This document shows, one piece after another, positions 2,336 to 59,572 of a stretch of 64,000 nucleotides of DNA; the stretch's first letter is position 1, and each line of letters starts with the position of its first letter. Position numbers and translations under genes: made by a program. The stretch lies in the NCBI GenBank assembly GCA_946965045.2, contig OX337233.1:2170001-2234000 (forward strand), given 5' to 3'. The notes beneath the pieces were generated by a model that was given only the letters and a program-made list of their open reading frames with translations, was not told where the DNA came from and searched no databases. Origin of the DNA: Epithemia pelagica (taxonomy: Eukaryota > Protista > Bacillariophyta).

Positions 2336-3076
2336 GGTCGTCGTGGTACATGAAGTGCCGTGGTTGGTGGTTGGGTGACGAAGACGAAGACGAAGCTCCA
2401 GCTCCAGTGGATCGTCGGCCAGACGTCTTCGAAAGGGGGCGCGCAGACAAAACCACACCATCCTTCGCCCCCATTTAGTTAGAAGGATCCACGTGTAGAA
2501 CCCCCCAAACGGGGGGTCGTGTCGCCGCGAGTCTTTTTTTCGTCACGCAAAATGTCCTCATCCAACTCCCTGTTCTTTGGGATCCATTGATCGTTGGTGA
2601 TTCCACTTCCAGAGAGCGTTGTGGTTGTTCCAATAGCCAAGCATTGCGCTGGTGTACATTGCAAACGACGACATTGCGCTCGAGACGACACGCAAAGAAG
2701 ATCTGAGATTTTGGTACACGAGTGATATTCTTCCCAGTGATATCTTTGCTGGAGGGTGTCGTGACGGTCTTACTTGTTGTTATTGTCTCGTTGGTACGAG
2801 TGGTCATACTACGGTATTGATACAGACGGAGCATATTCTAGTGAAAGTGCCGAAAGGAAAAAAGACAGAGATCTCTGGTTTGGTGTGCACCTCTTGCTTC
2901 GTTCCAACGCTTCCAGATCCTGATTTGGGGGGCTTGGATTCGAATCTGCAGTGAACAAAGGAGAAAAGGAACTTGCACAAGGAAACGGTCGAAGAGAACG
3001 GACAAACCTTGTCCCCGAGTTTGGAATAGTCGACAACCCTAAGAAACAGCCTGCGTAAGAACACCAACGTATCGTC

Positions 3077-6000: not shown

Positions 6001-9000
6001 ACATGATTACGAAATCCTACCACCCTTGGCCTGGCAGGGTTTACAGGCCTGGTATGATGGAGGGCCACCCATTCATCGATCTGTCGTGCGGTATATTGAC
6101 ACCTCCGCAAAAGGGGCAGGGAATCTCCACAGTGGTAGTCCTTCCAGGGTCGGTGGAGCAAAGACTCGAATGCCGACGGAAAATGAAATTGAATTGTATC
6201 CCTATTTTGTGACGGTCTATCTCTGTGATTCCACTTCGGGTGGAGAAGCTAGGCCGTTTCAACAGAACTATCAATTAAGTCGCGTCAGTCCCGTCGGTGT
6301 CATGTTGGTCCAACTGTGCAAGGAATTGGAAATTGATCCTGCCATGGCACGGTTATGGGTTTTGGGCTTGACGCCTGATGGCGCCGTGGATGACGAGGGA
6401 ACCAAGGATTGGATCTTATCTTTGGAACAGAATATTGGCGATCAACGAAAAGTGCGCTTGGATGCAGTGCAAATCAAGAAGGATATTCATTTGTTGCTTG
6501 AGCTCAAACATCGCGAGACAGGAACGTGGCCACGCGGAGAAGATGGAAAGGAATGGATCCTTCGGCGCAGTCGCAATCGCAAATTGGCTGGGGCTGGTGG
6601 AGGAGGACCGGGTGGAGTGGGAGGAGCTGCACCCGAACTTAATTTGGGCGACGGCATTGTGGGTCTGTACAATATGGGGTAAGTGATCGGCTCTATATAT
6701 GAGTATGTTTTGCAGGTCGCACTTTGTACTTGTATTTTCTGCGTACACATTGTTTCTAATGGCACAAAAATGGGGTTTGTCATCTCTTGTCTTTGACAGC
6801 AATACATGCTTTTTGAATTCGTCCATTCAGTGCATCAGCCATACGCCCATTTTCCGGGAGTATTTTACCTCCAAGGCATACTTAAATGATATCAACACTA
6901 CCAATCCATTGGGATATCAAGGGCATTTGGCGCAAGTATCGGCTGTCCTCATCAACTCCTTGTGGAAGCCGTTCAATCAAACAGCGGTACCTACGACGCG
7001 GGCCAGACGCGTGACGACCCCTGGTTCCTACGTTATGGTGAATGCACAATCTCTTACACCCAAGACGTTTAAAGAATCATTGGGGAAATTCAACGACCAC
7101 TTTTCGGGAAATGAACAACACGACGCCCAAGAACTTCTCACATTTCTACTAGCCGGGTTGTCGGAGGATTTGAACCGAATTGTTGACAAACCATATACTG
7201 AAGCTCCAGATTCCGATGGTCGTCCCGATCGAGAGCTGGCGGATATATGGTGGGCGAACCATTTGAAAAGAGAATTGTCGATTGTAGTGGCTCTCTTCAA
7301 TGGCCAATACAAGAATTTACTAACCTGTCGAACGTGTAAATACGAGAGTGCCCGTTTCGAACCATTCTCCACCTTGACAGTACCTTTGCCGGAAGACGAC
7401 ACTGTGGCCGTCTCGGTAATCTTATACCCGTTTTCCGAAGGTCATGAACCTACGCGATATTGCGTCCGAGTACATGCCACTGGAAACCTGGTGGATGTAT
7501 TGCCAGCACTGGCCAAGGAAATATTAGCAGACCGTGATAAAGGGAGTGCAACTTTGGATCCAGAGACATCCAAGGACAAATTATCAGAGAAAAATGAAGA
7601 CAAACAAATAGAAGATCCTAGAATTGCTCGAAAGGCTCGAGAACTTTCCATCGTCGATATTAAAGATGGCTACATTGTCCGAATTGCTCCCTTAAACTGG
7701 GCATTGCGTGACCTGCAGAATAAGGACACTGGGGATCTTCCAACATTACATGCCTACGAGCTTGACAATTTCCCCGAAACAGAAGACGAGGAACCAGAAG
7801 CAAAAGACCAAGCAAGCGAAGGTGATAAGCAGTCCAAGTCGGGATATCTAGCAATATCACAAAGACGATCCGATCTTGTTTTTCGTGACTACCTCCACCC
7901 ATTGTCACATAAACTGTTTGGCACACCGGTTTTGATGAAATTAAAGAATATGGATGATTGTACTGGTCGCCAGTTGTACGACCTTGTCGCCAAACGTCTC
8001 CGCCCTCTTGTCCCACGAGCTGTCCTGGGCTTTTTGATGGGAGAACGGGAAATTGATCATTCAAGCAATTCAAATAGCGCCGATGCAACGAAGAAGGATA
8101 AAGAAGACGATACGAAGCATAGACTTTACAATGGGATGATAATGGGCATGACGGATGATGAAGAGATATCGGCTGGTACTTTGCCTCGGTACGGTTTTCG
8201 ACTGCGTGTCACATCTCGCGATGGGCGAAAATGCTTGATTTGTCCCTGGTACAAGTGTTGCGTCGGTTGTTTAATCAACGACGATGATTCCTTGGCCAAT
8301 ATCATTGATGGTGATAGTTTGGTGGTGGATTGGCACTTTGCCGTGGACGTCGCCACATCCGGATTTGGTTCTCGTGCTGGTTTGCTGGATCCCATTGCTG
8401 CGCGAGGATCGGGTGCCGGGATGCGACTGACGCGTCCGATTGGTACGGTGCCAGTCAAGATGCATCGTACGTGTGGAATTGGTGGCAAAGGTTCTCATGC
8501 CGGTGCCATCACATTGGAAAAGTGTCTGGAAGCCTTTGCCAAAGAAGAGCGCATTCCGGAAGCTTATTGTTCAAAATGCAAAGATTTTCGAGTCCAGACC
8601 ACGCGCATGACACTATGGCGGTTACCTCCCGTCCTGATTATCCATTTGAAGCGTTTTCAATTTACACCCACAATGCGGAGGAAATTGCGTGATTTAGTCG
8701 TTTTCCCACTAGAAGGTCTAGATCTGTCCCACATCATGGCTCCGGATGGCTCACAATCGGACGGAATTGGAAAAGCTCCCTCATGTGGTGGCAAGAGGGG
8801 CAAGGATGATGACGGCGACGATGACCGAACGGAAGCGACGGCTGATACCAAAGGCTCTTCTTCAACCACAAGAACAAGTGGAAAGGACGGGAGTATGTTG
8901 TATGATTTGTATGGAGTTATTCACCATCAAGGTGCCTTATCGGGTGGTCATTACGTGGCGTCGTTAAAATCGGAAATTGACCAACAGTGGCGTTTGTTCA

Positions 9001-9194
9001 ATGACGCGCAAATTTACGAAATTCACGCACGAGATGTGATTGATTCGAGTGCATATATTTTGTTTTATTTGCGTCGCGATGTCGCCCAATCGCGACTGTC
9101 TGATTTATGGGATTTGAAACAAGTGGCAAGCATGAGCGAAGAAGAAATGGACAATTTGGTCAAGGGCAAGGCTGATCGGTGTGTCATAAGCTAA
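3077..9194 (+). CDS. Large ubiquitin-specific protease (DUSP + UBL + USP catalytic domain; USP15/USP32-like); join(3077..6678,6800..9194)
   Basis: DUSP motif WYIINAEWL...DYEILPPLAWQGLQAWYDGGPPIHR. GT-AG intron 6679-6799 restores the Cys box GLYNMGNTCFLNSSIQC. QHDAQE box and His box HQGALSGGHY...FND present. Confidence 0.9.
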
Positions 9195-19261: not shown

Positions 19262-19802
19262 GGTCTGGGTTATTTTGCAATAGGAAGTGGCACAATTGAG
19301 ACCGATTGGAGTCAAAATCTGACATTGTCCATCCTCGTCTCACATAACAATGTCCAACGGTTTTTACACATTGTCATACCGTGAGTGTTAATGCACTTTG
19401 CCCCAGAAAAATGCACTCTAATAAAATCATCATGGTCCTCCGTCACCTGCGAAGCGTTAGGACTTTCAAACTGCCTCCACGGATTTTATATTCGGTGTAG
19501 GCGAGAAAACGTATGAGTATAACATTCAACGGATGGCTTTGCAGCAAAAGGAGTTGCTATGGCTACTTGTTCCCGCGTCTTTTTGCTAAGAGTGTTCATC
19601 ACACATTTTTTTACGCCCTAGCGGGGGTTATAATTCTATAGTCTGTCCGTCAATCATTTTTTGACTCGGAGAAGGGAATTCTCGACAGGATCCGACTAAT
19701 GTGCGACCAGAGTCTAAACCTTGCTTGGGGGTAACATCTTTTGCATGTCTCACTTTTCGCTGTCCCTGGAACGAAGTTTCCACAAAAATCCACAAAAAGA
19801 CA

Positions 19803-22800
19803 ATGGGACGAAAACGCAAGAACAGGCAGTCCAAGAAGAAAGTTCAACAGAACTACACAGCATCATGGAGGAATAGGACCATGGATAATGCATTGAATGC
19901 AGACGAATTCCGTCAGAGGCAGTCGAAATTCCACAAGAAGATTGCAGCGCAAGAGAAGGACATTCTGTCGAGATCGATTTTCGTTACCAATGTACGAGAT
20001 TTACGGGTAGAATCGAACCTGGAAGCACTCAAGAAATTCTTTAACGATGTCTATGGAGACGTCAAATACTGTCGAAGAACTGTTCGTAGCGACAGAAGGA
20101 AAGGCCGAGGTCGACCTATTATCTATCCACCGGCACGTGTTGTTTTCTTCCACAAAGACGATGCCGAACGTGTGTTCGGTGGGCAAGAACTATCCAAAGT
20201 GGTTGGAAGTCAGCAAATCCGGTGCCCTCTTGGACACAAAAATGGAGAAATCTTGGTTCGCCCTAGTATTCCTTCAAACGACATTTTGCTGGAAGAAACC
20301 GAGGGCTCACAAGTGAGGATGCGAGCTAGTGGTCTCTGGCTGGGGCATTGGTGTCCAGGAGAACGTGAAATGGATATGCTGAGTAACGATCATCAAGATG
20401 AGGGAGAGTGGCTAGGAGTTGTAGAGGGTTCCCCTCCAGTGATGGTTATTGATATCAAGGAACGGTGCATTGAATTGACTTACAAGGGACCTGCGAGAGA
20501 GTATCGAATTATGTTCAAATTCAAAGAACTTTTGACCCCCATCGCTCTCTGTCGACAGGAGTCCGATGAGCTATATCTCATCTTTTCTCTCAAGAACCCT
20601 CCTTTGGTTCATGCCAAGCTATCAGAATACGAACCAGGAGACAACATAGCGGAGATTCTGTGGCAATTGTCCGAAATCAACCTAGTCAACGAAAACGAAC
20701 CAGAATTCCGACGAACACGCACGTGGGACAGGCTTTCAGGAGAACAACTAGGCTTGTACTTAGGGTACAAGCTTTTGATCCCGGGGGTTCAGATCAAGGA
20801 ACTTTTCCTGAACGATCAACTTCGGGAAAGTGGGGTGATTGGTTTCAGTTCAGAAGACTTTCAAAACCCAACCAGGATCAAGTCGACTGACATTGGTTTT
20901 CGGTACGACGAACAATTCAATGCCGCTCTGAAAGCTGTTAGAAATTTTCAAATTGGTAAGAACTTTTTTGTCATGCGGCGGTACAGCTTCCGTCGCCCTG
21001 AATTGATGGTGGAGGAACTCACACTTGTGCAGCTTCGCTTTTGCGTCAGCTTCGTGACGAGGGAAAGTTCACAACGTATCATGCGATTACCGACAAGGCG
21101 ACGTTTGGCAATGAATGTCAGGCCAATATTTTGGAAGTACTGTCGTCGACACAAGACCGCGTTTTCCTCAAGCACGCCATACTTGTAAGTAATGCGTCAT
21201 TATCAGGTAAACTTATTTGGGACACTAAAAGGTTCATTTGTTGTCCATCACCAGGCGCTGGAGGATATGGCATCAGGATTTGGCTGCACTAGGTACCCCT
21301 CACGTTTGTTCCGCAAGTTACTGCCTGGTGCGGCTTTTCGTGATTCGCCGCCAGTGCCTCCACACTGTATACTTGTGCCACGGATACGGCTTAGTCCATT
21401 GCGCGTGCATTTTCTTGGGATGGGCATCGAGACAAGTAATCGGGCAGTTCGCCATTTTTGCCAGGAATACGGATTTGCTGTGGACGAGTTCCTTCGAGTA
21501 AGCATCACCGAAGAAGATGGATCACCGCTTCATGGATCAGAGTTGACGCAAACTGTGAGGGGACATTTGAAAGACTCTCTCGTCAACGGAATCGACTTTT
21601 GTGGAAGAAAGTTTGTCTTCTTGGCCTATTCATCTAGTCAGCTCACAGAGTGCTCCGCCTGGATGGTTTCTGAATCGCGTCATTCATGGGACGTTGTCAC
21701 AATGCGGAACGAACTTGGGGATTTCTCAAGATGTCGGACGCCTTCAAAATTTGGAGCTAGACTTGGCCAGTGTTTCTCTACCACTTTTACCAGATCTATC
21801 GAAAGGTCTTCTCTCCAAGCTCGTCCTGTTGTCATCGATGACATCGAAGGGGCCAGAGGTTGCCACTCCGACGGGACTGGTTTGATCAGGCGGAGAACCC
21901 TGTACGAACTTCTCCTTGAACTTCCTATTGGACCGAAAGATTTGAAATATGTGTCGATTATTCAGATACGTTATGGGGGTGCAAAAGGAACTCTGACAGC
22001 TTACGATGAACCAATGGTTTATTTACCAGAAGGAACTCCGAATGCAGATGTTTATATCCGGGATAGTATGATCAAATTTGGTGGAACATTTGCTGGTGTG
22101 GAGGTCTGCTCTATCGGGAAACGTGTCCCGTACTATCTTAATCGGAATGTTATCTTACTATTGGCAGCGCTTGGGATACATGAACAACATTTTTTGGATA
22201 TGCAGAGAAATATGTTGGTGAACCTGGATAAAATGCTGGATGACGGATTGATTGCACTTCAAATGGTTCGGTCTCTCACAGGAGCTGGAAACGAGTCTCG
22301 AAAAACTCTTCTAAACATGCTTTCAGCAGGACTCACTCCGTCGACAGAGCCTTTTCTGTACGATTGTTTGTCGGCAATGCGCAACCATCAACTGTTTGCT
22401 CTTAGAAAGAAATCAAGGATTCTGGTCGAGAAAGGTGCTGTGTTGGTTGGTGGACTCGATGAAACTGGTGAAGTTCCCGAAGGCTTCGTTTTTTTTCAAA
22501 TTGGAAGCTCACCCTTTGTGGGTCGTGTGTTGGTGACAAAGCACCCCGTAATGCACCCTGGAGACGTGCGCATGCTTACGGCGATCGACGTGCCGCAACT
22601 GAGAGGTCATCGAAATGTTATTCTCTTCAGTAAGCATGGAGATCGTCCGGAAGCGGACAAAATGTCAGGGTCGGATCTCGATGGCGATGAATTTGCCGTC
22701 ACATGGGACAAAAGACTTTTCCTGGAAAGCAACAAAGAGGCAATGGATTACGAAGGCACAGACACATCGCGAGTGCGCCGTTTGTCGGGTAAACCAGAAA

Positions 22801-23945
22801 AGGTGACGGAGGAACTCGTCGTTCATTTCTTGGATCATATCAAAAATGCCAGCGTTGGACAGATATCAATGCTCTGGTTAGATCATGCAGCTTCCAAAGG
22901 CGCAACATCCGATGAATGTACTAAATTAGCCGAGCTTCATTCCATCGCAGTTGACTACCCAAAGAGTGGTGTCCCTGCAGAAATCCCATCAACTCTTCGA
23001 CTGAAGTCGTCGGTTCCACGGCCGCATTGGCGGGAAAAGAAAGCATCTCCGAGCTACCAATGTAGCTCCGTCATTGGGAAGCTCTATGATCAAGTGAAAG
23101 CCGCCCGCCGTCACGAGAACAAAGACGCAGTCGCTAAGAGGAAAATCGATCAGTATGGAACTATTGTTTGTGAGGCTTACCCGGACTGGTCTCCTAGCGC
23201 TCTTCGTAAGGTGTACAGCTTGGACATTTCCATGGCTTTGATGCCATCGGAGTGTCAGAGTTCTCGGAGTAATGTGTCGCAGGATCTGCAAGCGTGGGCC
23301 AACGATGAACGCGCCTCCTATGAACAGGAACTTCTTCGCATCATGAATAAATACAAAATCAGAGGAGAAGGGGAAGCTCTCACCGGCTGCATCAGAAAAT
23401 ACCACAAGTTCTACAAGAAGCGGCAGCATGATTTCTCTCAGGAAGTTCGCCGTTTGGGCGTCGAGCTGACAAAGAAGTATCGAAGATCATTCTTTCAGTG
23501 CGTCGAACGTGTCTCAAGACATATAAAAGATCGGCCCAGTGGAGATTTTACTGATGGATTGATACGTTTTCAGTTTGATGACGCGGACAATGACGAGGAT
23601 GAAGTAGACGAACAGGCTGGTGAGGATGAGAACGAATCTAATCTTATATTTGATGAAGACGACGACAGTTGGAGCGAGGGAAGCATTGAAGATGATAAAC
23701 TGAAAGAAATCGAAGAGATAGCGCTGAAAGACCCAGCATTGTGCAATGATGACGAGGTTATTGTTCAACGCGTGGCCTTTGCTTTGGCTGGTTCATGCTA
23801 TGATTCTGCATACCATCCAGAACATCGCTGGACGGATCGAAATAGAAAATTGACACTCTACAGCTTTCCGTGGATGGTGGCAGACGTCATTTCTCATGCG
23901 TGCTTGAGCTTCCGGACTCAATCGAACCATTTCCGTCAACCATAA
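19803..23945 (+). CDS. RDR: Cellular RNA-dependent RNA polymerase (DLDGD, RDR-alpha type) with N-terminal RRM-like domain; join(19803..20955,21033..21184,21255..23945)
   Basis: Motifs SKFGARLGQCFS, HSDGTGLI, QIRYGGAKG, TKHPVMHPGDVR, SGSDLDGDEFAVTWD, HSIAVDYPKSG. Two GT-AG introns give 3996 nt in frame. Confidence 0.92.
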
Positions 23946-40387: not shown

Positions 40388-43300
40388 TTAATTTGACATG
40401 GCCACTTCAAAACGTTTTCGATCTCGTTTCTTTTTTGAGTTGTGCTTGATCTTTGCCTCTTGAAGTCTCCGAGTTACGAGGGAGTCTGGTTTGTCCGAAC
40501 AGCAAATCGAGGCCTGAAAGGCATCCACTGCGGCTGACCAATCGCCTTGTTCCATCTCAGCCGATCCCAGTCGAAAGTAACCTTTCGCTTGCAGTGCTCT
40601 CGCATGCTTATAGGTTTCCTCAGGTTCATCTTCGTGTATGACGATATATTCCTCTCTGTCTCGCGGATCGGGAATAACGACGGCACCGCGACGTGCTGTG
40701 AACGGACTCAATAGTCGTAAAGCTTCCACTGCATGCGAACACGCATCGGCAACTGCCGAAAACCGTGGCTTGAGCAACAGCAAAGCCATGTTCAGCCTGG
40801 ATGTGATTAACACCCACAACAGTGGGGACCACACTATCGGCAGACACTCCTGTCGTTTCCCAGTTGCCACACATAAACCCGCCTTCAAATGTGCAAGCTC
40901 ACCGTGACTCCCTTCGAAGTATCTCATAAAGGCTACAGAGCAATATTGAATGGACTTGTCATACCGTCGAGCAGCAGTGTCTAGCTGACCATCTTTCGTA
41001 GCTTCATTGCCACCCTCTTTCAGTAAAACAGAGGTTTCGAACAAGTACCTTTGACTTCGGGCTTTGGCATTCTCACTTAACACCACATGAGCACCTTCAC
41101 TCTCATCATCATCTGTCTCGTTCCCTGATGAGCGACGTGATGACTGTGTATCATCTTCCTCTTTGGAGTCGTCGTCGCTAATATCCCACACTGGCCAGGC
41201 AAAGTCATCCTTTCCACTTCCTTTATATAATCGAAGCCAGATCGGAGGATCATCCAACAAAGAATACTGTTTGTTGTCGTGTTCAACAAATTCTTTCAGC
41301 AAATGGCTTGGACCAACTTCGTTGCGTGTCAGAAGATAGTCACTCCAATTTTTCCAGTTTAAATGGTACTTCTCCAGCTTAAGCGGGTCAGTAGTCATAC
41401 GTTCGTCAAGCAAAATCCAATCACTGGGGTGGTCCGGCACCAGATCAGCTGGATGCGTTTTCCCCACGTTTCGGAAATTCCACGGTTGGTGATTGTGAAA
41501 GCTGAACGAAACTCCCAATCGCTCGGCCTGATGTCTCAGTCGGCATATGCTTGTACGGACAGTCAATGGACACAAACCATGTGAATCGATTGGAACGGCC
41601 ATTTCTGTTTGCGCTGTCCGATAGCATTCATATCGATTGGAGCGGAGTATTTGAGGAAGTGATTTATATGCATTTCCGATGCGGGGAGAATCGTAATCCA
41701 CCATTCCACGTCGATTCGGTGCCGAAAATTTGCCGCTCGCAGAAATCTCCTGCCGACTGGCAATAAAATCTGGCAGAATTCCAGGCGAAGTTTTGAAGAG
41801 TGAACATAACATCTGTGCAGCTTTGGGGTTCTGTGCAACTGGACTCATTTCAAACTTGTCCTTTTGCAAGCACATTGCCCGGCCTTCTCGAGAATCATTC
41901 ACAGATGGATCGATTGGGGGTGTAGCTCTCCAGAGGCGAGCGGTTGAATCAATCCCATAGGTGATGAAAAAGGGGAGTGATGGATGCGGAACGACCCCAT
42001 TACAGGTGGACGTATCGGCACTCATGAGGGAGACAACTGCGCCTGTATCACGTTCCATTATCCAGGCATGGCCTGAATCTGACCCGGTGCAGATGTATTC
42101 ATCGTGAGGACCGGCATATCTTGCATTCTTTAAAAATGTGAACCTGTTCAAATGACCACCATATACCATTGCGTCGGAAACGGGTCTCCGAGTGCTACTA
42201 TTCGCTGCTCTGAAATCGATTTCATCCAGAGTTGGTCCTGCAGGACAGGAAGACTTTTCGCCCAGAATAGGAAATGAGTAGATTTGATCACTTTCATACG
42301 ATACAAGTAGTTCTCTTCCATCTTTGGAAACATCCAACCCACTAACCGACACGTCTCCGGTCAAAAGGACAAAGCGGGGTTTGTACGATTCTACCACCTG
42401 TCGTCTACTTCCATCCACTCTCAGATCGTAAAGATCCACAAAAGCCGATGAACCACCGGCAAACACGTAATGAGACTCAGTTTCCGCTGACGATGGTCGC
42501 CACACTGCACATGCCTTGCAACAGCGCGACGATGACCGACTATCCAGGCTCCTATCTCCACTGCTAGCATCTGAAGCCTCACCCAACAACGACTGTCGTG
42601 TCTGTTCCCTTGGTGAGAGGCGCAAATCGAACAGGTGCAGACCGCGGTCGCTGCACAATAAGCCTGTCTGTGCATTTAGCATTTTATGAGAGAACGCCAA
42701 TCCTGAATGAAGAAGGAAGGAAGGTTCTTCGCCATGAGACAGCAATGGATCAATGATGACGGAAGAAGATTGTGCTTGGACATCGACCAACCGCAGGAAT
42801 CCATCGGCAGCGCATGTCAACATTTTTCCAGGATGTTGGGGGAGAGGAGCCACGTCGAACACATTGCCTCGGTGCCCTGTCGCGATAGTCGCCAACGGGA
42901 CGATACTTCCCGCAACCGTACAACTAGGGTTGTTCTGATAGTGCTTTTTCCATTCACCTTGAAAGCCGGCAGGACGTTTCGTAGTTGATAAGGGACAATA
43001 GGTATCCCATCCACCGACCATCGGGTTTGCAGTTCCCATGGCGTTGCGAGCATCCCAGAGTTTGACAACGCGATCATCTCCCGACGTTGCCAATTGTGTG
43101 GGGCAACTTTCGACACCACCCCATTCATCTTTGACAATGGATGCAGCATAATTCGAGTTCTGAGAGGCAGCCATCCCCGGAGGGGCCGCCAATCTCCACG
43201 GAACTGACATCCAGCATGCTGTGTTGATACAACCTCCATGTCGAAAGTCAGGCTTCCAAAAGATTTTTTTGTTCGACCTGTTACCTCCTTGTGTTTCATC

Positions 43301-43723
43301 ACCTGGTTGATGCCGAGAACTTCTTGGTTGGCTGTCTTCTTCCATTACATCGCTATCGTCTTGATCTTCGATTGACTCGACATTACTATCGATATCGTCC
43401 GAATCTTCGTTCCGGCGGCCACTGAGAAAAAGAGCCATCTCCTCCAAATCCTCATCGGTCATTGGATTCTCATCTTCTTCTTCTCCATAGTCGTCGTCCT
43501 CGTCGCCCTCCTCCTCTTCCTCTGAATGTGCAACGTGTCGATGGCCCAATCGTGTCCATGTAAACTGCGCGTCATCGTCATCGTCATCGTCGTCATCTTC
43601 ATCGCTCCCTGTATCAACGTGATCATCCTCTCGTCCAGAACGCCGAGCTTTCCTCTGTAAGTTGGCAGCGTACATGATACTAGCGGGAGTTCCTGGACCA
43701 GTCGCTAGCATAAGATTGTGCAT
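40388..43723 (-). CDS. WD40 protein with C-terminal TPR-like region, DCAF8/WDTC1-like
   Basis: HGGCINT, GHRGNVF, ELLVSYESDQIYSF, GHLN..TFLKNARYAG..DEYICTGSDSG, NGVVPHP..PFFITYGIDSTARLW. TPR-like LKEGGNEA..DG....A...Y and KGYFRLGSA. Confidence 0.8.
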   Translation of the reverse strand: MHNLMLATGPGTPASIMYAANLQRKARRSGREDDHVDTGSDEDDDDDDDDDAQFTWTRLGHRHVAHSEEEEEGDEDDDYGEEEDENPMTDEDLEEMALFLSGRRNEDSDDIDSNVESIEDQDDSDVMEEDSQPRSSRHQPGDETQGGNRSNKKIFWKPDFRHGGCINTACWMSVPWRLAAPPGMAASQNSNYAASIVKDEWGGVESCPTQLATSGDDRVVKLWDARNAMGTANPMVGGWDTYCPLSTTKRPAGFQGEWKKHYQNNPSCTVAGSIVPLATIATGHRGNVFDVAPLPQHPGKMLTCAADGFLRLVDVQAQSSSVIIDPLLSHGEEPSFLLHSGLAFSHKMLNAQTGLLCSDRGLHLFDLRLSPREQTRQSLLGEASDASSGDRSLDSRSSSRCCKACAVWRPSSAETESHYVFAGGSSAFVDLYDLRVDGSRRQVVESYKPRFVLLTGDVSVSGLDVSKDGRELLVSYESDQIYSFPILGEKSSCPAGPTLDEIDFRAANSSTRRPVSDAMVYGGHLNRFTFLKNARYAGPHDEYICTGSDSGHAWIMERDTGAVVSLMSADTSTCNGVVPHPSLPFFITYGIDSTARLWRATPPIDPSVNDSREGRAMCLQKDKFEMSPVAQNPKAAQMLCSLFKTSPGILPDFIASRQEISASGKFSAPNRRGMVDYDSPRIGNAYKSLPQILRSNRYECYRTAQTEMAVPIDSHGLCPLTVRTSICRLRHQAERLGVSFSFHNHQPWNFRNVGKTHPADLVPDHPSDWILLDERMTTDPLKLEKYHLNWKNWSDYLLTRNEVGPSHLLKEFVEHDNKQYSLLDDPPIWLRLYKGSGKDDFAWPVWDISDDDSKEEDDTQSSRRSSGNETDDDESEGAHVVLSENAKARSQRYLFETSVLLKEGGNEATKDGQLDTAARRYDKSIQYCSVAFMRYFEGSHGELAHLKAGLCVATGKRQECLPIVWSPLLWVLITSRLNMALLLLKPRFSAVADACSHAVEALRLLSPFTARRGAVVIPDPRDREEYIVIHEDEPEETYKHARALQAKGYFRLGSAEMEQGDWSAAVDAFQASICCSDKPDSLVTRRLQEAKIKHNSKKKRDRKRFEVAMSN

Positions 43724-44621
43724 ACGATCTTGATTCCTAAAGAATAAAGATACAAAGATTCAAAACAGGGACCACAGTAAGACCTTCACACAGCGATTCA
43801 TTCCACAAGAACGAGTCCGACCGCGGTGCCGAGCAAACTTATTGGAGGCGCAGAAACCCGGCAAATGGGGTACTTAGGGTTGCGAAAGGTACATACCATG
43901 CCATCGATGAAAGATGAGACGTCAATGATGACGGTCTCAGAGCGGTTCCTCCCAAAGTTTGCCGTCGCCATAGGATCGAATTCAAACTCAAATCTTTCCC
44001 TCCCAAGGCACCGGATTCTCGAAAAATCTCCAGGATTGGATCTTTCATAATGGGACGATCATCACACCAGTGAGAATGTCCCTCTCCAAGGTCCATTTCT
44101 TTGGTTTCTTTGATTTCACTATTGTTTTCGACCTTCCTTCCTCCCAATTGAGAGTCACTCTAAACCACGACGACTCTAGAACAACAAGAAGCCGTTCTTT
44201 GGGCACTCCCCGACCTTCGACATTCACGAACCAAGTATGCCGCGGATGAGGAACTAATAGTCTTCACAATACTCACACGGCCATTTTTTCTGTTTCTTCG
44301 TTTCCGTGCGAGCGATGATGGGGTGAAGGACTGATGCTGATGCCTGATGCCACTTGCCTTGCCGTTATTATTAGGATTCAGAAACAGACATGGTCTCTCT
44401 ACACTCTGCTCTACTGTGATAAAGATAAAGGGATCTTCGCTCTTCGGTTGAATAATGTTGTGTCGTTGCGTTTTTCCGCCTCTCGCAGTCGCAGCTGATT
44501 TTGGTCGCAGAAACACATATATCCGGGTCTGACATCTCTGGACGGACGCAATGATGCCAAAACGCCAGAACAACAATTAACAAATAACAACACGCCGTTG
44601 ACGACCACAACCACTACTACC

Positions 44622-52182: not shown

Positions 52183-52328
52183 CTTTGGACCAGTGAGCGT
52201 TCGACTGACCACTGACCACCGATGACCCGGGATCCGATGCCTGTTGTCTGATTGGTGGAACTCAGCGACTGATCAATCACGTACACGCCGCAGCTGCCGC
52301 GCACCTACCTACTACGGTTACCTACCTA

Positions 52329-52761
52329 CCGTAGTTTGCGCATTCCTGTCCCCCCTATAGTCCTGTCCCCCCCACTCCCCTTAGACGTACATGGCCCCCT
52401 AACTTTTTATCTGTAGGCTCTTTCTGGGCTTATGGGTTACCCCCACATTCCTCACGTTCCGAGCTTTCTATCGCACTGCCTGACATTACATGGGAGTGAA
52501 TCAAAGAGGAGAAACAAGAGATGAAGCATGATGGGTATTATGATTAGGGTTAAGGCTACGCATTGAAGCACGGTCTTTCCCCTGACTGGAATTGTGCGAC
52601 CAAACCTTATCTACAACCCCGAGGTTGAAAATTAATTTACTAGGAAATTAATTGTTTTGTGTGAATGGAATCTTAAGAAAAATTATCAAAAATTGCGTAG
52701 TCCTGTCCCCCTCCTCTTAATTTTTGTACATTCCGGGGGGACAGGAATCCGCAAATTACGG
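52329..52761. mobile_element. Tc1/mariner(pogo)-type MITE (433 bp)
   Basis: 27-bp TIR CCGTAGTTTGCGCATTCCTGTCCCCCC vs GGGGGGACAGGAATCCGCAAATTACGG (2 mismatches), flanked by TA on both sides. The symmetric flanks CCTACC/GGTAGG could instead extend the TIR. Confidence 0.75.
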
Positions 52762-53533
52762 TAGGTAGGTTAGGCAACGTCGACCGACTTGAGCATCTGG
52801 CATCTGATATGTCGATTGTCGATGGTATGATATATTACTCCTATTATGTACTTGTACTTGGTCAGATGATTACAGATTGCCTTCCCCCCGACCCGAGGCT
52901 TGCCCGAGTGCCGGAGTCCCTATTCCTATTCCCTATTCCCTATTATTTTCTGTGCAATAGGAGCCCTTGGTTACCAAATCAGAGGCCCGTGCTGCGAAGG
53001 ACCATACCCGCGCGCAATCGGAATTCCTCTGATTCTATATATGTCCAAACAGTACTAGCGTTTTTAGTTAAGTATAAGCACTGTCTTAGAGAAAAAATTC
53101 TGTTGGAAATCCAACGGTTTCATATCTCAATAACTAAACCATAGAATTTTCTAAAAATTGTTTCGTTGGAAAGATCATATTCAAATTGTTACAGTTGCAA
53201 TCTCTTTAGATCGTGAGAAACGATTCAACGTACCCAAAAATGCCGACATTGCACTGACCCGTTTTATGAGAATGATTCTACACGACCAGTCACACCCCGC
53301 GCGACGAGAACATAAAAAACTTTCATGGCTGAATACAATATAAATGGTATCAATCGCATATCAATCGACGTTGAATCGTCTGTTTCAAAATTTTGGCATG
53401 AAATTTCTGTTTGCAACAAGATTCAACGACACTCATTCATGTCATCTTTCATCGATCCCCTTGCCGAAGCCCCGTAGATAGTTGTTATCTCTTCGTAACT
53501 TACTTTTCCGTAGATACTGTCACCATTGTCACC

Positions 53534-56500
53534 ATGAGTCCGAAGAAATTCAAGCGTAAACCTCCTCCCCCTCGTCCTAGGAAGATGCCTCAACTCGTCT
53601 CTCCTAGACATCAAAATCCGAAAGACCGCCTTGATGCCATTCGAAAACTCCACCAAAACATCCCTCGTAGAACACCGTCCCCAAGAAAACAACGTCCTAC
53701 AACAACAACTGGTTCCACGGCTACGAAAGGGGTTAATCTGGCAGAGGCTTTCTTTTCGACGCCTGATTACGAGCGTATTCGAGACCTATCTCCTTCTCCT
53801 AACCTACAAACACGTCAAGTTCGTAAAACCACTGGCGTACCCATCTACATGAGCAGCAATGAACGTGACCGCATTGCTAGATTAATGATTGAGTTCGCGG
53901 AAGACGACACCAAGCCGTGCTCCGTATTCGGAAGTCAACGATCTGAACTATTTCGCGCTTTTTATTTCTGTGGCAACTGCCTTCTTGCCGACAGACAGGA
54001 AGAATCAAATCCTAAAGTGCCAGTGAACCGCCGTGCTGAAAATGGCACTTACACATGCCAAGCAGCCCACACTGATTTTGGTTTTCCCACTCATCGGCTT
54101 GATGACGAAGAAGAAGAAGATGAAGAAGCAGATCCAAGCAAAAAGAAATCGTACAAGGCCAACACTGTGCAGACGACGTCAGACAAATCATCTAATGGCC
54201 CTTCCACCGTCAACACCGTACAACCGTTGTCTAGTCGTAACACCGTTGTCACTGTCGCCGATAATGAAGAAAAAGAAGATGGTTCCTCGTCGTCGGAAGA
54301 CAATTTTTCACCATCGGACTCTGAAGAAGAACGGGAGATGAACTCGCATATTTGCCGTCCATGTACGACTGCCTCTGTTGGTACTCAAACTACCCAAACA
54401 ATGAATCCCATGATGTTTCGCAATGTTGAAGGAGACAACTCAACGACAACATCCGAACAAGAAACCATGCAAGCAGCCAAGATTCGTCAACTTCAATTCT
54501 CCAATGACACTCTTAAGCAAACGGTCAGAGAACTGAGACTCGAGAATAGGGAGTTACTACGTTCAATGAAAGCACATGAGATCAAGATAAGGTCGAAGGA
54601 CGACAAGATTCGCCGGTTACGAAAGGAAATGGATGATCTTGTTCGGAAATTTGGGAACGTTCCTAAATCATGTACCGACACCAAGAAATCCAAGGTCATA
54701 GTGAAACACATCAAGCGTGTAATCAAACGCACAGTATGCAGGCACGCAAGCAATAGTCATCGCAGTAAAACTTTCTTCAAATTACTCGCGGAAATGCTGC
54801 TACAAGACAACATACACGATTGGCAGCTAAGAGACACTATCATTACGGTGTTTCGGAAATACATGCGAAAGCACGTGTTCACGCCCCATCGTATTCTAAA
54901 AGAAATGGATCTGTCTGGTGGCACAGCCAACTTCGAGTCTATCGAAATCCTACGTCGAGTGGAGAACAATGGCAGACGATACATGCACACAATGCTACCT
55001 AGCACCTCCTCTATGCAACGGTACGCCGACTGTGTTGAACGACTTGGCCAACACATCATTCCATTCCACTCCATTCGCAACTCGGTGGACGACTGTGAAG
55101 GATTTTATTTCCGCGTTGCAGACATCATGAGAGAGATTCTGAAATCGGGGAATCTTTTGGACAGCGTCGCCAAGATTCGAAATATCCTTCTCTCTCAAAG
55201 CCTGGATGGAGCAACACTTTCCAAGAACCTTAATCATACCTTGTGCGGAATTAAATTCAACGATCGAAGCAATCCACTTCGTCGTTCAAGACATGCTGTC
55301 TTTCCAGTAGTTTGCATCATTGGAGGAGAGACAAAACTTCGTGTCCGCGGGCTTTTCTCGAGAGTGATTAAGGAAGGAACTGAGGCGGCATTGCAAGTCC
55401 TTGTGAAGAAATATGGCATCAAGCCTGTTATTCTTGCATTCAACAGTGATATGAGCTGTGAATGGAAGATTGCAGATTGTGGGGGCGCTGCCAAAAACAC
55501 AATCTACCCCTGTACCAAGTGCTGTTGGACGAGTGAGGACTTGCACACTCGTTCTCAAAAACCATATGGTTGCAATTGGTGTGTCAAAATGGGACACACC
55601 CGAATCCCTGGTTGGAGATGTCGCCATTCACGCATGTGTAATCCAAAACACTTAGAGAAACTCAAAGAAGAAATGGACGACTTTGAGAAATCGATGCCAG
55701 CCATTGGGAAAGCTGTCCAGGAGATGTGGGACAAGTCTGAAATAAAGGTGACAGCGGACCCGAGACTAGAACCAACTCCAGCACAAACAAAGAACATTCG
55801 CTCGATCCACTTTGATGTTACAAAGTGTTCCAGGCAATCGCGGTCAAAGTACAATACCTACATCACAGGTGACATGCAACTACGAGAAATGGATGTGGGG
55901 GGGCCTCTGGTGGAACGTCAACGTAGATTACAGATTCAACTTGGTAGAGAGTGGATGTACAAGGACTCCTTGCTTTGTCGAGAAAAGCACGGAAAAGGAG
56001 GTGCGAACACGGCTCTTGTTATGATGATGTCGGTATTACCTTGTATTCTCCACATGGAGATACGAGTCGGAGTCAAGATGTTGTCGTTACTGTTCAAGGA
56101 AGGTCTGACTCGAGCGAAGATGGACGAACTGGAATGGATGGACGTTTCCAAACGAGGGGGTGTTGGACCACGATGCAATCATTTCATTGACACTCTTCGG
56201 CATATCTCAAATACGAAAATACAGGGCACAAGAGATCGACCGGCCCAAACCAAAATCCCATTTGATAAGCAAACTAACTCGTTGGGGATCCTGAAATACA
56301 ACAACGTTCAGATCAGGAAGTTTTTGGAGAACATAGATCTGTTGATTGAGAAGTGCATCGTAAAAGAAGATGATGTGGCTCTCTGGAAGTCGTCCATTGA
56401 GCAATATCGTAAGGCAATGACGATCGTTCGTAGGAGGCATCGGTTGTCCTCCTCCGAAATATGGGATTTTCAACGACACTCTGACTTTTTCTTTCGCGAC

Positions 56501-57073
56501 TGGTTGCAACTTCACGGAGCAGAAGGGATGACCAACTATGTACATATGATTGGAAGCGGTCATGTTCTAGAATACCTACAGCACTGGGGGAACCTCGCTA
56601 ACCATTCCCAGCAGGGATGGGAAGCGTTTAACAGTCAGTTCAAAACGTATTTCTTCAATCGCACGCAGAGAGGTGGTTCCGTAAACAAGGGTCGTGGGAA
56701 ACAGAGCAGGATGCTTCCGATGGCGCGATGGTTGCAACGCAGATTGATTTTCATGTCAGGATACAGCGAACAAGAAATTATGGACCGACACAACGACATT
56801 TCAGAGGAAGAGAAGGAGGCAGCCAAGAACTGGGTGCGTGACCATGGCGGTACGATCGAATTTGGACAGCTCATTCAAGCGGAAGAAGATTCAGAATCCA
56901 TCAATGAAGATGGAGAATATGTTTTTAACTGGGAAGTAGGTACGGCGGATCTATATGGAGAAATTGTTGATGTCGAAGCGGATGTTGATCTATATGATGA
57001 GCAACAGCTGGTGGAACAGGAAAGTGATTTAGAGTACGACTCAAACGTGCCGTCTACAGATGATGAGCAGTGA
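53534..57073 (+). CDS. RAG1/Transib-related DDE transposase (1179 aa)
   Basis: Motifs in RAG1-core order: QSLDG (D558; cf. ESCDG), FNSDMS (D639; cf. GYDEK), YPCTKC (cf. YICTLC), CILHMEI (cf. ALHCDI), MTNYVHMIGSGH (cf. ITNYFHKTLAH), GNLANHSQQGWEAFN (E1030; cf. GSIGAWASEGNESGN). Confidence 0.8.
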   Translation: MSPKKFKRKPPPPRPRKMPQLVSPRHQNPKDRLDAIRKLHQNIPRRTPSPRKQRPTTTTGSTATKGVNLAEAFFSTPDYERIRDLSPSPNLQTRQVRKTTGVPIYMSSNERDRIARLMIEFAEDDTKPCSVFGSQRSELFRAFYFCGNCLLADRQEESNPKVPVNRRAENGTYTCQAAHTDFGFPTHRLDDEEEEDEEADPSKKKSYKANTVQTTSDKSSNGPSTVNTVQPLSSRNTVVTVADNEEKEDGSSSSEDNFSPSDSEEEREMNSHICRPCTTASVGTQTTQTMNPMMFRNVEGDNSTTTSEQETMQAAKIRQLQFSNDTLKQTVRELRLENRELLRSMKAHEIKIRSKDDKIRRLRKEMDDLVRKFGNVPKSCTDTKKSKVIVKHIKRVIKRTVCRHASNSHRSKTFFKLLAEMLLQDNIHDWQLRDTIITVFRKYMRKHVFTPHRILKEMDLSGGTANFESIEILRRVENNGRRYMHTMLPSTSSMQRYADCVERLGQHIIPFHSIRNSVDDCEGFYFRVADIMREILKSGNLLDSVAKIRNILLSQSLDGATLSKNLNHTLCGIKFNDRSNPLRRSRHAVFPVVCIIGGETKLRVRGLFSRVIKEGTEAALQVLVKKYGIKPVILAFNSDMSCEWKIADCGGAAKNTIYPCTKCCWTSEDLHTRSQKPYGCNWCVKMGHTRIPGWRCRHSRMCNPKHLEKLKEEMDDFEKSMPAIGKAVQEMWDKSEIKVTADPRLEPTPAQTKNIRSIHFDVTKCSRQSRSKYNTYITGDMQLREMDVGGPLVERQRRLQIQLGREWMYKDSLLCREKHGKGGANTALVMMMSVLPCILHMEIRVGVKMLSLLFKEGLTRAKMDELEWMDVSKRGGVGPRCNHFIDTLRHISNTKIQGTRDRPAQTKIPFDKQTNSLGILKYNNVQIRKFLENIDLLIEKCIVKEDDVALWKSSIEQYRKAMTIVRRRHRLSSSEIWDFQRHSDFFFRDWLQLHGAEGMTNYVHMIGSGHVLEYLQHWGNLANHSQQGWEAFNSQFKTYFFNRTQRGGSVNKGRGKQSRMLPMARWLQRRLIFMSGYSEQEIMDRHNDISEEEKEAAKNWVRDHGGTIEFGQLIQAEEDSESINEDGEYVFNWEVGTADLYGEIVDVEADVDLYDEQQLVEQESDLEYDSNVPSTDDEQ

Positions 57074-57118
57074 TATAGGTATAATTATATAAAGAGTGGA
57101 GAAATATGATCAAACAGT

Positions 57119-58903
57119 CTACGAGTAGTTTGTAATGGCTTGTCCAATCTCATTGGTATGGACGAAAAGGGTCATATGCTGTTCCTCTCGACTCTTTTTA
57201 CGACGGAACAGATTTCCCCCGACGACGCGGCAAAGGTAAGTGGGCGAGACAGGGTGGTCCACCTTTCCAATGTAATGAAAGGAACGAAGATTTGGACTAT
57301 GATGACGGGTTGGGTCTTTGTTACACAGATAGGTAGCAAAGTCTTCTTTGTGTTGTAGCACGTAAATTGGTTTCCTGTTTCCCGGAGGGAAGATACCACT
57401 GATTTCGTAGACGGTGTTGTCGTAAAAGAATGAGTCGCCCAAGTAAATCATTTGTTTACCAACCTGGCATCGAACCACTGTGTTCATGGATTCTATAGAT
57501 GCATCATCTTCAGAAAGGGGCGAAACCAGATCAGATTTCTCTTTCGGACGAACTGAAACGGAAGAGAAACTGGAGGTATCCGAGGTATCATTATCCATGG
57601 CGAGAATCTTGTCAAAGGTGGAGGGTTCTTTGTTCTTGATGAGTTTGTCTTTCGGGGGAGAATGATATTCTTCTTCGTCATCAGGGTCGGGCATCTCATG
57701 AGAGTCAACGAGAACATCTTGATTGAAAACCGTGTTGGTGGTTTCCTCATGTTTCGTTTGGAGTAACGTCGATTCCAAATGATCAGTTGGGGGAGGAACC
57801 TTCAGGGACCCGTCAGCCTTCGTGTCATACCTATAGGTCTGACAGCCAACAGTTACTCGGACTTGATGCGGGGAAAAGTGAAGATCCACGCGTTGCTCGT
57901 TGGACATTCGTTTGAATTGCTTGGGTCTATCCTCGGGAGCACATCCCTTGACTATGGTTAGGCAATGGCCCCTTTTCAACTCTTTTCCCATAGATCCGTC
58001 CTTGAGAGTGGGCTTGATTTCCGTTGAACCGTATACAGCGGGGAGTCCAACGAATTGACGGAGCATATCCAAGTCGTTCTGTGTGTTGAACCGGATGATG
58101 CCCTTCTCGAACCTCATTCTAATCTTTCTACGGGTTAGCTTACCATCGATGTCTAGGTAAGACTCAGACCCTGGAAAGAAGTGACAGAACAAGGACGGTA
58201 CGTTAGAGTTTGCAAGCGTAAAAATATAGTTCAATACTTCATTGGGAATAGGACCGATGGAAAGGGACTGTACCGATTTAGATTCGGCTTGTCCACTACA
58301 ACGATTCAACAATTTCATGAGAGCCTTCCGGATCTGAAACAGACCGAACCAGACATTTTTATGGTAGCAACGAGAGGCTATCACGAGTTGAGGGAAATCT
58401 CCTTTGCGTTGGTAATCCGTTGGGAAACACTTGATCTCTTGAGGATTGGCAAGGGTCATCTTGTGTTGTCCGTCTTTGTTCTTGAAAGCAGAATAGCGCA
58501 CTACGTATACATTTTTGATGCCTTCGGCCCATGAATTGTCCGGTTTTTCAAGATCCGACGGGTGGAAGACAAAAGCCGGATACAAAACTTCAATGGATTC
58601 TCGTTCGGAATCTTCGATGTCCATGGAAACGTCAGTCTGGTACAACTCAATGTTATGAGATCCAGTTGAGTGCTCGATGGGAGCATAGTTATGAATCGGT
58701 GGAGTTGGGTGACAATTGAGCTTCTTGCGAGGAAAGAGGGGAAGATAAAGAATGATGGATTGCTTGCTTCCTTCTCGGATAATCAACTTGCCGATGGTCG
58801 TCGTACCATCATCTTGATTCGGAAGTCGGGCATGGACAAAGGTTCCGAGACGAAAGTAATCGTCAACTTGCTCGACGTAGATGGCTCCACGGGCAGAAGT
58901 CAT
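57119..58903 (-). CDS. Orphan 594-aa protein inside the transposon, tail-to-tail with the transposase
   Basis: Uninterrupted ORF from ATG 58903; its stop lies 45 bp from the transposase stop; no recognisable domain. Confidence 0.75.
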   Translation of the reverse strand: MTSARGAIYVEQVDDYFRLGTFVHARLPNQDDGTTTIGKLIIREGSKQSIILYLPLFPRKKLNCHPTPPIHNYAPIEHSTGSHNIELYQTDVSMDIEDSERESIEVLYPAFVFHPSDLEKPDNSWAEGIKNVYVVRYSAFKNKDGQHKMTLANPQEIKCFPTDYQRKGDFPQLVIASRCYHKNVWFGLFQIRKALMKLLNRCSGQAESKSVQSLSIGPIPNEVLNYIFTLANSNVPSLFCHFFPGSESYLDIDGKLTRRKIRMRFEKGIIRFNTQNDLDMLRQFVGLPAVYGSTEIKPTLKDGSMGKELKRGHCLTIVKGCAPEDRPKQFKRMSNEQRVDLHFSPHQVRVTVGCQTYRYDTKADGSLKVPPPTDHLESTLLQTKHEETTNTVFNQDVLVDSHEMPDPDDEEEYHSPPKDKLIKNKEPSTFDKILAMDNDTSDTSSFSSVSVRPKEKSDLVSPLSEDDASIESMNTVVRCQVGKQMIYLGDSFFYDNTVYEISGIFPPGNRKPIYVLQHKEDFATYLCNKDPTRHHSPNLRSFHYIGKVDHPVSPTYLCRVVGGNLFRRKKSREEQHMTLFVHTNEIGQAITNYS

Positions 58904-59572
58904 GATCTGGGATGTCGGAAATCAATTCAGGAGATGAATGGAGAGTTTGTTGGGACAACAAAACGACCAGGGATCATTGGAAAGATCAATGGCGTCCATT
59001 GTTATCAAGAATCGGTGCGATGTGCGATTGGCATTAGGAGTTGCCTCCGAGTTGGTCAGTACCGGTGGAGAAAATATGAGAGAAAACGACAATTCTGTGT
59101 CAAAATGCATTAAGTACGATATGTCTTGGAGTTTTTCTGATTATATGTAATTTCCGTTGAAATTAGCGCGCGTGTTAGGTTTTGCAAGCGCCAGCCAAGA
59201 CTTTTGGTCTTAGGGGGGGCGTGAATGTGAGCGAATTTGGTATGGAAAGGCTCCTATTGGCAATGTAGACACATCTCCATTATCCATTATGTTTATCAGT
59301 CGAGTTTAGAGTAGAGGCAGAGGTTAGAGGTTAGAGGTGCTGAAATCTATGATGGTAGATGCAGAGCGACGTTAACAGCGGAAGCTCGCATGCGGTACCA
59401 AAATATCGCACTTCCGCTTCCGACGGTCCCCATAAAGGAGAATTAGTGGTTAGGCCCTATCTTCGCAGGACCATCCTGCATGGATCTCCCCGGTACCAAA
59501 ATAGAGCTTGACGGTACAGCAGATCCTGTAAGAGGCTTAACCGATAACCCCATCGCAAGGAAATGTCGAAAT

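Follow-up and report, generated by a model that had tools for sequence, protein, structure and literature searches.

An intact, recently mobile element of the diatom Epithemia pelagica pairs a transposase of predicted RAG1-type architecture with a convergent BAH-like partner and probably represents an undescribed family of two-gene transposons

RAG1 is the enzyme that assembles antibody genes, and the RAG1-RAG2 pair is the textbook example of a domesticated transposase. RAG-like (RAGL) transposons show the layout TSD-TIR-RAG1L-RAG2L-TIR-TSD, in which target-site duplications (TSDs) of 5 bp and terminal inverted repeats (TIRs) with heptamers similar to those of recombination signal sequences (RSSs) surround two convergent genes, and RAGL and Transib elements have also been reported from another stramenopile, with a divergent RAGL in Aureococcus, and from bacteria (PMC10462144). 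A central question in this field is by what route, and for what reason, a Transib-like enzyme became dependent on a second, chromatin-reading subunit. Here, a stretch of 64,000 nucleotides of Epithemia pelagica (assembly GCA_946965045.2, contig OX337233.1, positions 2,170,001 to 2,234,000, hereafter the window) was analyzed, in which an original prediction made from the sequence had placed a RAG1/Transib-clade element with a captured, non-RAG2 partner gene. Our results indicate, with a probability of about 0.78, that the window element is a DNA transposon of the autonomous cut-and-paste type and belongs to an undescribed two-gene family, which combines a DDE transposase of RAG1 architecture with an obligate, convergent, BAH-like accessory protein. 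No published description of such a two-gene family, of a BAH-type transposon partner or of a 1-bp TSD was found in the literature, Repbase and Dfam lying outside the search.

The unit had been predicted at 52959-59255. A TIR-bounded unit of 6.3 kb is indeed present, its true bounds lying 4 bp further out on each side, at 52955-59259. The inverted ends are 25 nt long and match at 21 of 25 positions (52955-52979 versus 59235-59259). Since an inverted repeat alone could arise by chance, the boundaries were tested against a second copy, L001, situated on a 916-kb contig of ENA assembly ERZ21939226 and carrying a transposase that is 95% identical to that of the window by protein search. The BLASTN alignment of L001 with the window covers 52955-59259 at 88% nucleotide identity, the flanks being unrelated; it stops exactly at both ends, indicating that the element is 6,305 bp long and that its ends are no chance repeat. 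In the same assembly, L002 (6,330 bp) and L003 (6,033 bp) hold the gene pair as in the window between CAATAGGAGC...GCTCCTATTG ends, with transposases 49-66% identical. Copies with both open reading frames (ORFs) and the same termini are therefore represented by L001, L002, and L003, each within different flanks. The terminal 10 nt (CAATAGGAGC) are identical at all eight ends of the four subfamily copies. A metagenomic relative, 36% identical, forms a 5,646-bp unit with CAATAGC... ends in three contigs whose flanks differ. Across 80 further metagenome loci, the termini follow CA[ACT]TA[GC]...[GC]TA[AGT]TG, a pattern shared by the window and most relatives. L093 ends in CACTATAGAG. The third terminal base varies in a complementary manner between the two ends of relatives (CAATA/TATTG, CACTA/TAGTG, CATTA/TAATG), implying that this base belongs to the inverted repeat. 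TIRs of L094 were searched for and not found, and a scan of the metagenome contigs with the exact TIR pattern gave zero matches.

Mobility can be observed directly. Contigs of three public sequencing runs (kind unrecorded) that hold the element were aligned to window positions 53300-59295. In all three runs, an empty site was also present, at which the contig fits rightwards from 59260 while the preceding letters are those of the left flank of the window, matching 52929-52953 exactly and ending one base before the element. The empty site reads ...TTATTTTCTGT-G-CAATGTAG, with the G at 59260 followed by CAATG, and the filled site has a G on each side. The insertion is therefore polymorphic in the sequenced material, with one base duplicated. 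In the third run, the loose part of the contig comprises 112 letters and differs from the window at a nearby position, which would be expected of another haplotype or of a paralogous site. Moreover, the flank base is equal on both sides in all five long-read insertions (window G/G, L001 A/A, L002 T/T, L003 T/T, L093 T/T), for which the chance probability is ~0.001. In a distant subfamily, L007 and L008 show 2-bp TSDs, ca/ca and gg/gg. A duplication of 2, 3, or 5 bp fits none of the five long-read insertions. A 5-bp duplication GCAAT, considered because the right flank of the window reads gcaat, was rejected, as other copies have CAAT at the left end but not in the right flank. The complementary change of the third base at the ends rules out an AT duplication within a CAATTG target. 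With both ORFs intact and an empty site in the contigs of three runs, the recent activity that had been suggested is borne out: the 6.3-kb element is intact and recently mobile. As a separate observation, the right flank after the duplicated base reads CA, like the element start, in three of the five long-read insertions (window, with CAAT at 59260-59264; L001; L093), which may reflect a target preference for end-like sequence or chance.

As predicted, two intact and intronless ORFs converge on a 45-bp gap (Table 1). In the transposase, the motifs named in the original prediction all lie at the residues it gave, and D558, D639, E1030, C660, C663, C680, C683, C696, H698, H840, H1004, and H1010 do not vary among 30 family members sharing only 24-36% identity with the window protein. 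The spacing of these residues is close to that of RAG1. C660-x2-C663 follows D639 by 21 amino acids (aa), and H1004-x5-H1010 precedes E1030 by 20 aa, the corresponding values in RAG1 being 19 and 20 aa. The insert between the second aspartate (D2) and the glutamate comprises ~390 aa. Seventeen residues past the RAG1-like CxxC, a second invariant Cys/His cluster (CxxC, 12 residues, CxH; aa 680-698, 55571-55627) looks like an extra zinc site, of which RAG1 has no equivalent to our knowledge. The family-wide N-terminal C/H motif, to which Pfam gives no match, is probably a zinc-finger DNA-binding domain, and neither Cys nor His occurs in the acidic C-terminal 70 residues. When 1.84 billion representative proteins were searched with a profile, 4,107 relatives were retrieved at E up to 0.001 and, with the threshold set at 1e-30, still 647, so that the transposase family is large; it is conserved in 419 metagenome stretches. 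In run X3, the summed contig word depth climbs to 290-770 at 56500-56899 and 57100-57499, compared with ~60-120 over the remainder of the element. The SQQGWEAFN region, where conservation of the transposase is highest, coincides with the first peak, and the pattern fits many related genome copies or transcripts.

The AlphaFold2 model of the core (aa 440-1110) has a mean predicted local distance difference test score (pLDDT) of 86.4 and a predicted template-modelling score (pTM) of 0.80. When it was compared with solved structures by Foldseek, ranks 1-49 were taken up entirely by RAG1, amphioxus RAG1L, and HzTransib (E down to 3e-10), and Hermes followed at E 0.03. This ranking supports the RAG1-type structure originally anticipated. 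Comparison scores against the core model were 11.5 for the P element, 9.0 for ISCth4, and 7.5 for Hermes. The structural alignment begins at RAG1 residue ~458-460, past the NBD. Within the predicted structure the RAG1 domain order is recovered, comprising an RNase H-fold DDE core, ZnC2/ZnH2 modules, and a C,C,H,H zinc site. The core thus has, as modelled, RAG1/Transib architecture: dimerisation and DNA-binding, pre-RNase H and RNase H domains, and two zinc modules bridged by CxxC/HxxxxxH, with the catalytic residues in place. Among predicted structures (Atlas), Transposase_21 (EnSpm) clusters gave template-modelling scores (TM) of 0.55-0.58, an arthropod RAG1_RNase_H (Transib-type) cluster 0.53, and unnamed or DUF1280 clusters of fungi, rotifers, and cnidarians 0.58-0.63. 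Judged from these models and the motifs, the transposase belongs by lineage to the broad CACTA/EnSpm-Mirage-Chapaev-Transib (CMCT) clade.

The partner resembles a chromatin reader, its function being inferred from the predicted fold. Residues 1-165 pass the test for a BAH beta-fold; their language-model neighbours are weak, namely PWWP, BAH, and Agenet at 0.71-0.81. W124 and Y133 stay aromatic in distant partners, which is no more than a hint at histone or nucleosome binding. The best-conserved part across the family is the middle domain (aa ~180-380), which is alpha/beta in the model. No kelch propeller, PHD, or RAG2 chain was found in the partner model or its PDB matches; the partner is therefore not RAG2-like, and on this point the original prediction of a non-RAG2 protein holds.

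A convergent ORF follows the transposase directly at every locus fetched. With hidden Markov models (HMMs) of the partner built from family alignments, and counting loci with at least 1,300 bp of DNA past the transposase, a partner homologue was detected on the opposite strand in 59 of 60 loci, usually 10-110 bp away and down to 25% transposase identity. Transposases without any link to the partner ORF, which would have spoken against the original prediction, are thus not the rule here. The sole qualifying locus without a detectable homologue is L074, with 1,307 bp of downstream DNA, in which the partner may be too diverged or lost. Distant partners are 16-25% identical to that of the window, and their pairwise similarity is significant (E 1e-7 to 6e-11). 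The divergence of partner and transposase is correlated over 42 non-redundant elements (Mantel Spearman r 0.65, reached in none of 2000 permutations). Between the window and L001, for which dS is ~0.5, the ratio of nonsynonymous to synonymous substitution rates (dN/dS) amounts to 0.079 in the transposase gene and 0.091 in the partner gene. Linkage, co-divergence, and low dN/dS show that the partner is an ancestral, selected component and no recent passenger. The two genes are obligately linked, co-diverge, and are both under selection. The proposal that the partner had been captured was accordingly not established: the partner has diverged in step with the transposase throughout the family, so that any capture would have happened once, at or before the origin of the family.

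Coordinates of the features of the element are collected in Table 1.

Table 1. Features of the element and its two genes (window coordinates)
Feature	Position	Strand	Description
Whole autonomous element	52955-59259	+	6,305 bp; BLASTN versus copy L001 ends exactly there; empty-site contigs join 52953 to 59260
TSD, left copy	52954-52954		1 bp (G); right copy at 59260
Left TIR	52955-52979	+	CAATAGGAGCC, variable 6 nt, then TACCAAAT
Transposase gene 5' non-coding region	52980-53533	+	conserved ATTTTATATAG-type TATA-like motif ~80-90 nt from end (left-end alignment)
Transposase gene (ORF1)	53534-57073	+	1179 aa from ATG, no intron
Transposase N-terminus			basic; then zinc-finger-like C..FG..F.FC..C..C.A.H, about aa 130-190, within aa ~115-190 (window 53880-54110)
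Transposase middle and tail			acidic stretch; coiled coil ~aa 340-400; core aa 440-1110; acidic C-terminal tail
Catalytic core (predicted)	54851-56863	+	aa 440-1110; D558, D639, E1030; C660/C663 and H1004/H1010; C680, C683, C696, H698; H840
Intergenic spacer	57074-57118		45 bp between convergent stop codons; median ~45 bp in related loci
Partner gene (ORF2)	57119-58903	-	594 aa, no intron
Partner domains (predicted)			BAH-like aa 1-165; conserved middle, unmatched fold, aa ~180-380; disordered acidic linker aa 389-475; small SH3/Tudor/KOW-like barrel aa 476-594
Partner gene 5' non-coding region	58904-59234	-	ACCAAA-type subterminal motifs ~50 nt from right end; putative role
Right TIR	59235-59259	-	two blocks as at left end, equal spacing

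The ATTTTATATAG-type motif lies at 53030-53045 of the window and at an equal offset in L001 and L002; it is conserved in three subfamilies and is likely a TATA-type promoter element of the transposase gene. Just upstream of the element, a pair of 36-nt inverted repeats (52320-52355 and 52735-52770), 94% complementary, surrounds 379 nt and may represent a short non-autonomous element from a different family. At the L001 locus, a second, partial transposase homologue (positions 1-1992 of L001, minus strand; HMM score 177) is located 3.4 kb from the L001 element, which suggests clustered or nested copies in that assembly. Other very long ORFs of the window, at 3059-9191, 19665-23942, and 40391-43759 (1207, 835, 507+918, and 1123 aa), may be retroelement or other mobile-element genes.

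The element most likely moves as follows. The zinc-finger-like N-terminal motif of the transposase, together with the core, would recognize the 10-nt terminal block CAATAGGAGC, and the two ends would be paired within a transposase dimer through the coiled coil and the RAG1-like dimerisation domain. Subsequently, the DDE site would cut the element out, presumably by nick and hairpin chemistry, and strand transfers staggered by one nucleotide would give rise to the 1-bp duplication on reinsertion. The middle domain of the partner would most likely contact the transposase or the element in a physical complex, and its BAH-like and barrel domains would bind nucleosomes and, by reading chromatin, steer or license integration. 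Such a role would be analogous in logic to that of RAG2 with RAG1, the partner not being homologous to RAG2.

Several observations weigh against an undescribed two-gene family of this kind. Regarding the duplication, the 1-bp length is founded on one empty site and five of five matching flank bases, and it falls outside the 2-5 bp reported for TSDs of the CMCT clade (PMC12730594). In short-read metagenome contigs, flank pairs match in 3 of 11 only; these pairs were discounted, because the flanks of a multi-copy 5-kb repeat may stem from different loci. Regarding the transposase, there is no sequence-level tie to any named transposase family in Pfam or among PDB sequences. Searches of both with the two proteins, singly and as profiles, including a transposase profile of 25 sequences, gave only coiled-coil noise, and 55 family members had no match to the RAG1, Transib, and Transposase_21 (PF02992) models at E up to 10; placement therefore relies on predicted structure and motifs. 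Furthermore, the solved structures comprise no EnSpm, Mirage, or Chapaev transposase, so that the PDB ranking cannot tell Transib from those. Regarding the partner, the model is of no more than moderate quality (pLDDT 70.6, 13 sequences), one quarter of the protein lies within the BAH match, and Pfam BAH (PF01426) gives no match at E up to 1. For the middle domain no structural or feature match was found, an Atlas shape search with the whole partner and a feature search with the middle domain having returned nothing meaningful.

Three other explanations have to be weighed. CACTA elements are classically two-protein systems (for CACTA transposases, see PMC4158355), and the window element could belong to the CACTA/EnSpm or Mirage type (CMC) as a divergent member, with the partner as a functional, TNPA-like counterpart of the second CACTA protein that binds subterminal DNA and not chromatin. 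The CACTAC/CACTATAG termini of L049, L055, and L093, the CA..TG termini of the whole family, the very short TSDs, with the Mirage-like length of 2 bp in L007 and L008, and the fit to Transposase_21 clusters with TM up to 0.58 all lend themselves to this explanation. However, there is no Transposase_21 sequence match, the ends read CAATA (CACTA in some relatives), the TSD is 1 bp instead of 3, and the genes are convergent, neither co-oriented nor alternatively spliced; the recognisable domain of the partner is of chromatin-reader type with no known DNA-binding fold, and dense subterminal repeat arrays typical of En/Spm were not found at the window ends. A CMC element is accordingly regarded as rather unlikely. 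The same holds for genuine membership in the Transib/RAG1 lineage, whether as sister of Transib or within it, which would make the pair a second, independent Transib-plus-helper-gene invention parallel to RAG1L-RAG2L. HzTransib and RAG1 are the best solved-structure matches from end to end, RAG1_RNase_H clusters are among the Atlas feature neighbours of the transposase at 0.95, and the residue spacings are similar to those of RAG1. TSD length varies within Transib, with 5, 3, or 2 bp reported (bioRxiv 10.64898/2026.08.26.747230), so that the 1-bp TSD alone does not exclude Transib affinity. Nevertheless, the RAG1 Pfam models match none of the 55 members, and predicted EnSpm structures fit slightly better than the Transib-type cluster (TM 0.58 versus 0.53); the RAG1/Transib-clade membership claimed in the original prediction was not established. 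Nor do the TSD, which is 1 bp instead of 5, and the ends support it, since no CACAATG-like heptamer was found in the latter, only the CA start being shared with Transib, and no 12/23-type asymmetry is seen in the first 25 nt of either end, where blocks CAATAGGAGCC and TACCAAAT are 6 nt apart at both ends. In addition, the D2-E insert is longer than the ~250 aa of RAG1, and the extra CxxC..CxH cluster is present. Within the CMCT clade, of which the window element has the CxxC/H..H site and the CA..TG termini and lacks the TSD length, positions on the Transib side and on the CMC side are thus each considered doubtful, and what remains of our expectation goes to a separate deep branch.

The partner might also be passenger cargo, a captured host gene or a protein in other service such as anti-silencing, with no part in the transposition reaction. 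DNA transposons of the CMCT clade do carry cargo, for example TET/JBP dioxygenases (PMC12730594), and host silencing, instead of transposition, would be a plausible target of a BAH-type protein. We consider this improbable: the position and orientation of the partner are kept in nearly all loci, its co-divergence is accompanied by selection as strong as that on the transposase, and no free-standing host homologue occurs among 12 database matches, the contexts of three of which were checked.

If the two-gene family is as described here, the acquisition of a helper protein by RAG-type enzymes seems to have happened more than once. The family would then be an independent natural experiment, in which the enzyme fold and the convergent two-gene layout are shared and the partner has a different chromatin-reader-type fold. 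Tentatively, and as a claim we would not yet back, it may even constitute a superfamily-level RAG1-fold lineage widespread in aquatic protists, with an obligate complex of transposase and BAH/Tudor reader and a one-nucleotide stagger, convergent with the design of the V(D)J ancestor. If true, this would be an independent, convergent invention of a RAG1-type nuclease with a chromatin-reading partner, the design behind animal V(D)J recombination, and the 1-bp duplication would widen the known strand-transfer geometry for such enzymes. Being intact and polymorphic, the copy is a candidate for an active element and could be assayed directly, and it could possibly be developed as a genetic tool for diatoms.

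Comparison with known systems places these features in context. With PIF/Harbinger, which encodes a transposase and a Myb-like protein, the family shares the character of an obligate two-gene cut-and-paste element, the second Harbinger protein being needed with the transposase; the transposase superfamily is, however, unrelated, the partner fold is different, and the Harbinger TSD is 3 bp. Transib, as exemplified by HzTransib, consists of one gene, its canonical TSD is 5 bp and its heptamer is of CACAATG type; in the window family there are two genes, the TSD measures 1 bp, the D2-E insert is much longer, and the extra Cys/His cluster is present. The CMC/CMCT elements (Kojima 2025, PMC12730594) are similar in their CA..TG termini, short TSDs, and predicted structures (TM 0.55-0.58), and CACTA also in its two-protein system; they differ in having H(3-4)H where the window transposase has H(5)H, one residue longer than the definition, and in the TSD length, the Transposase_21 sequence match, the gene orientation, and the BAH-like partner. 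Compared with RAGL/ProtoRAG, the partner lacks the six-bladed kelch propeller and PHD, the TSD is 1 bp and not 5, RSS-like heptamers and nonamers, 12/23 asymmetry and any RAG1 sequence signal are missing, and the transposase ends in an acidic tail, without the CCGHC C-terminal clamp of RAG1L or an NBD with GRPR/K. Like RAGL/ProtoRAG, however, the element in the window and the related loci hold two convergent genes within inverted ends, a transposase with a predicted RAG1 core fold, DDE triad, and CxxC/H..H zinc site, and a second protein with a putative chromatin-reader-type module comparable to the PHD finger of RAG2.

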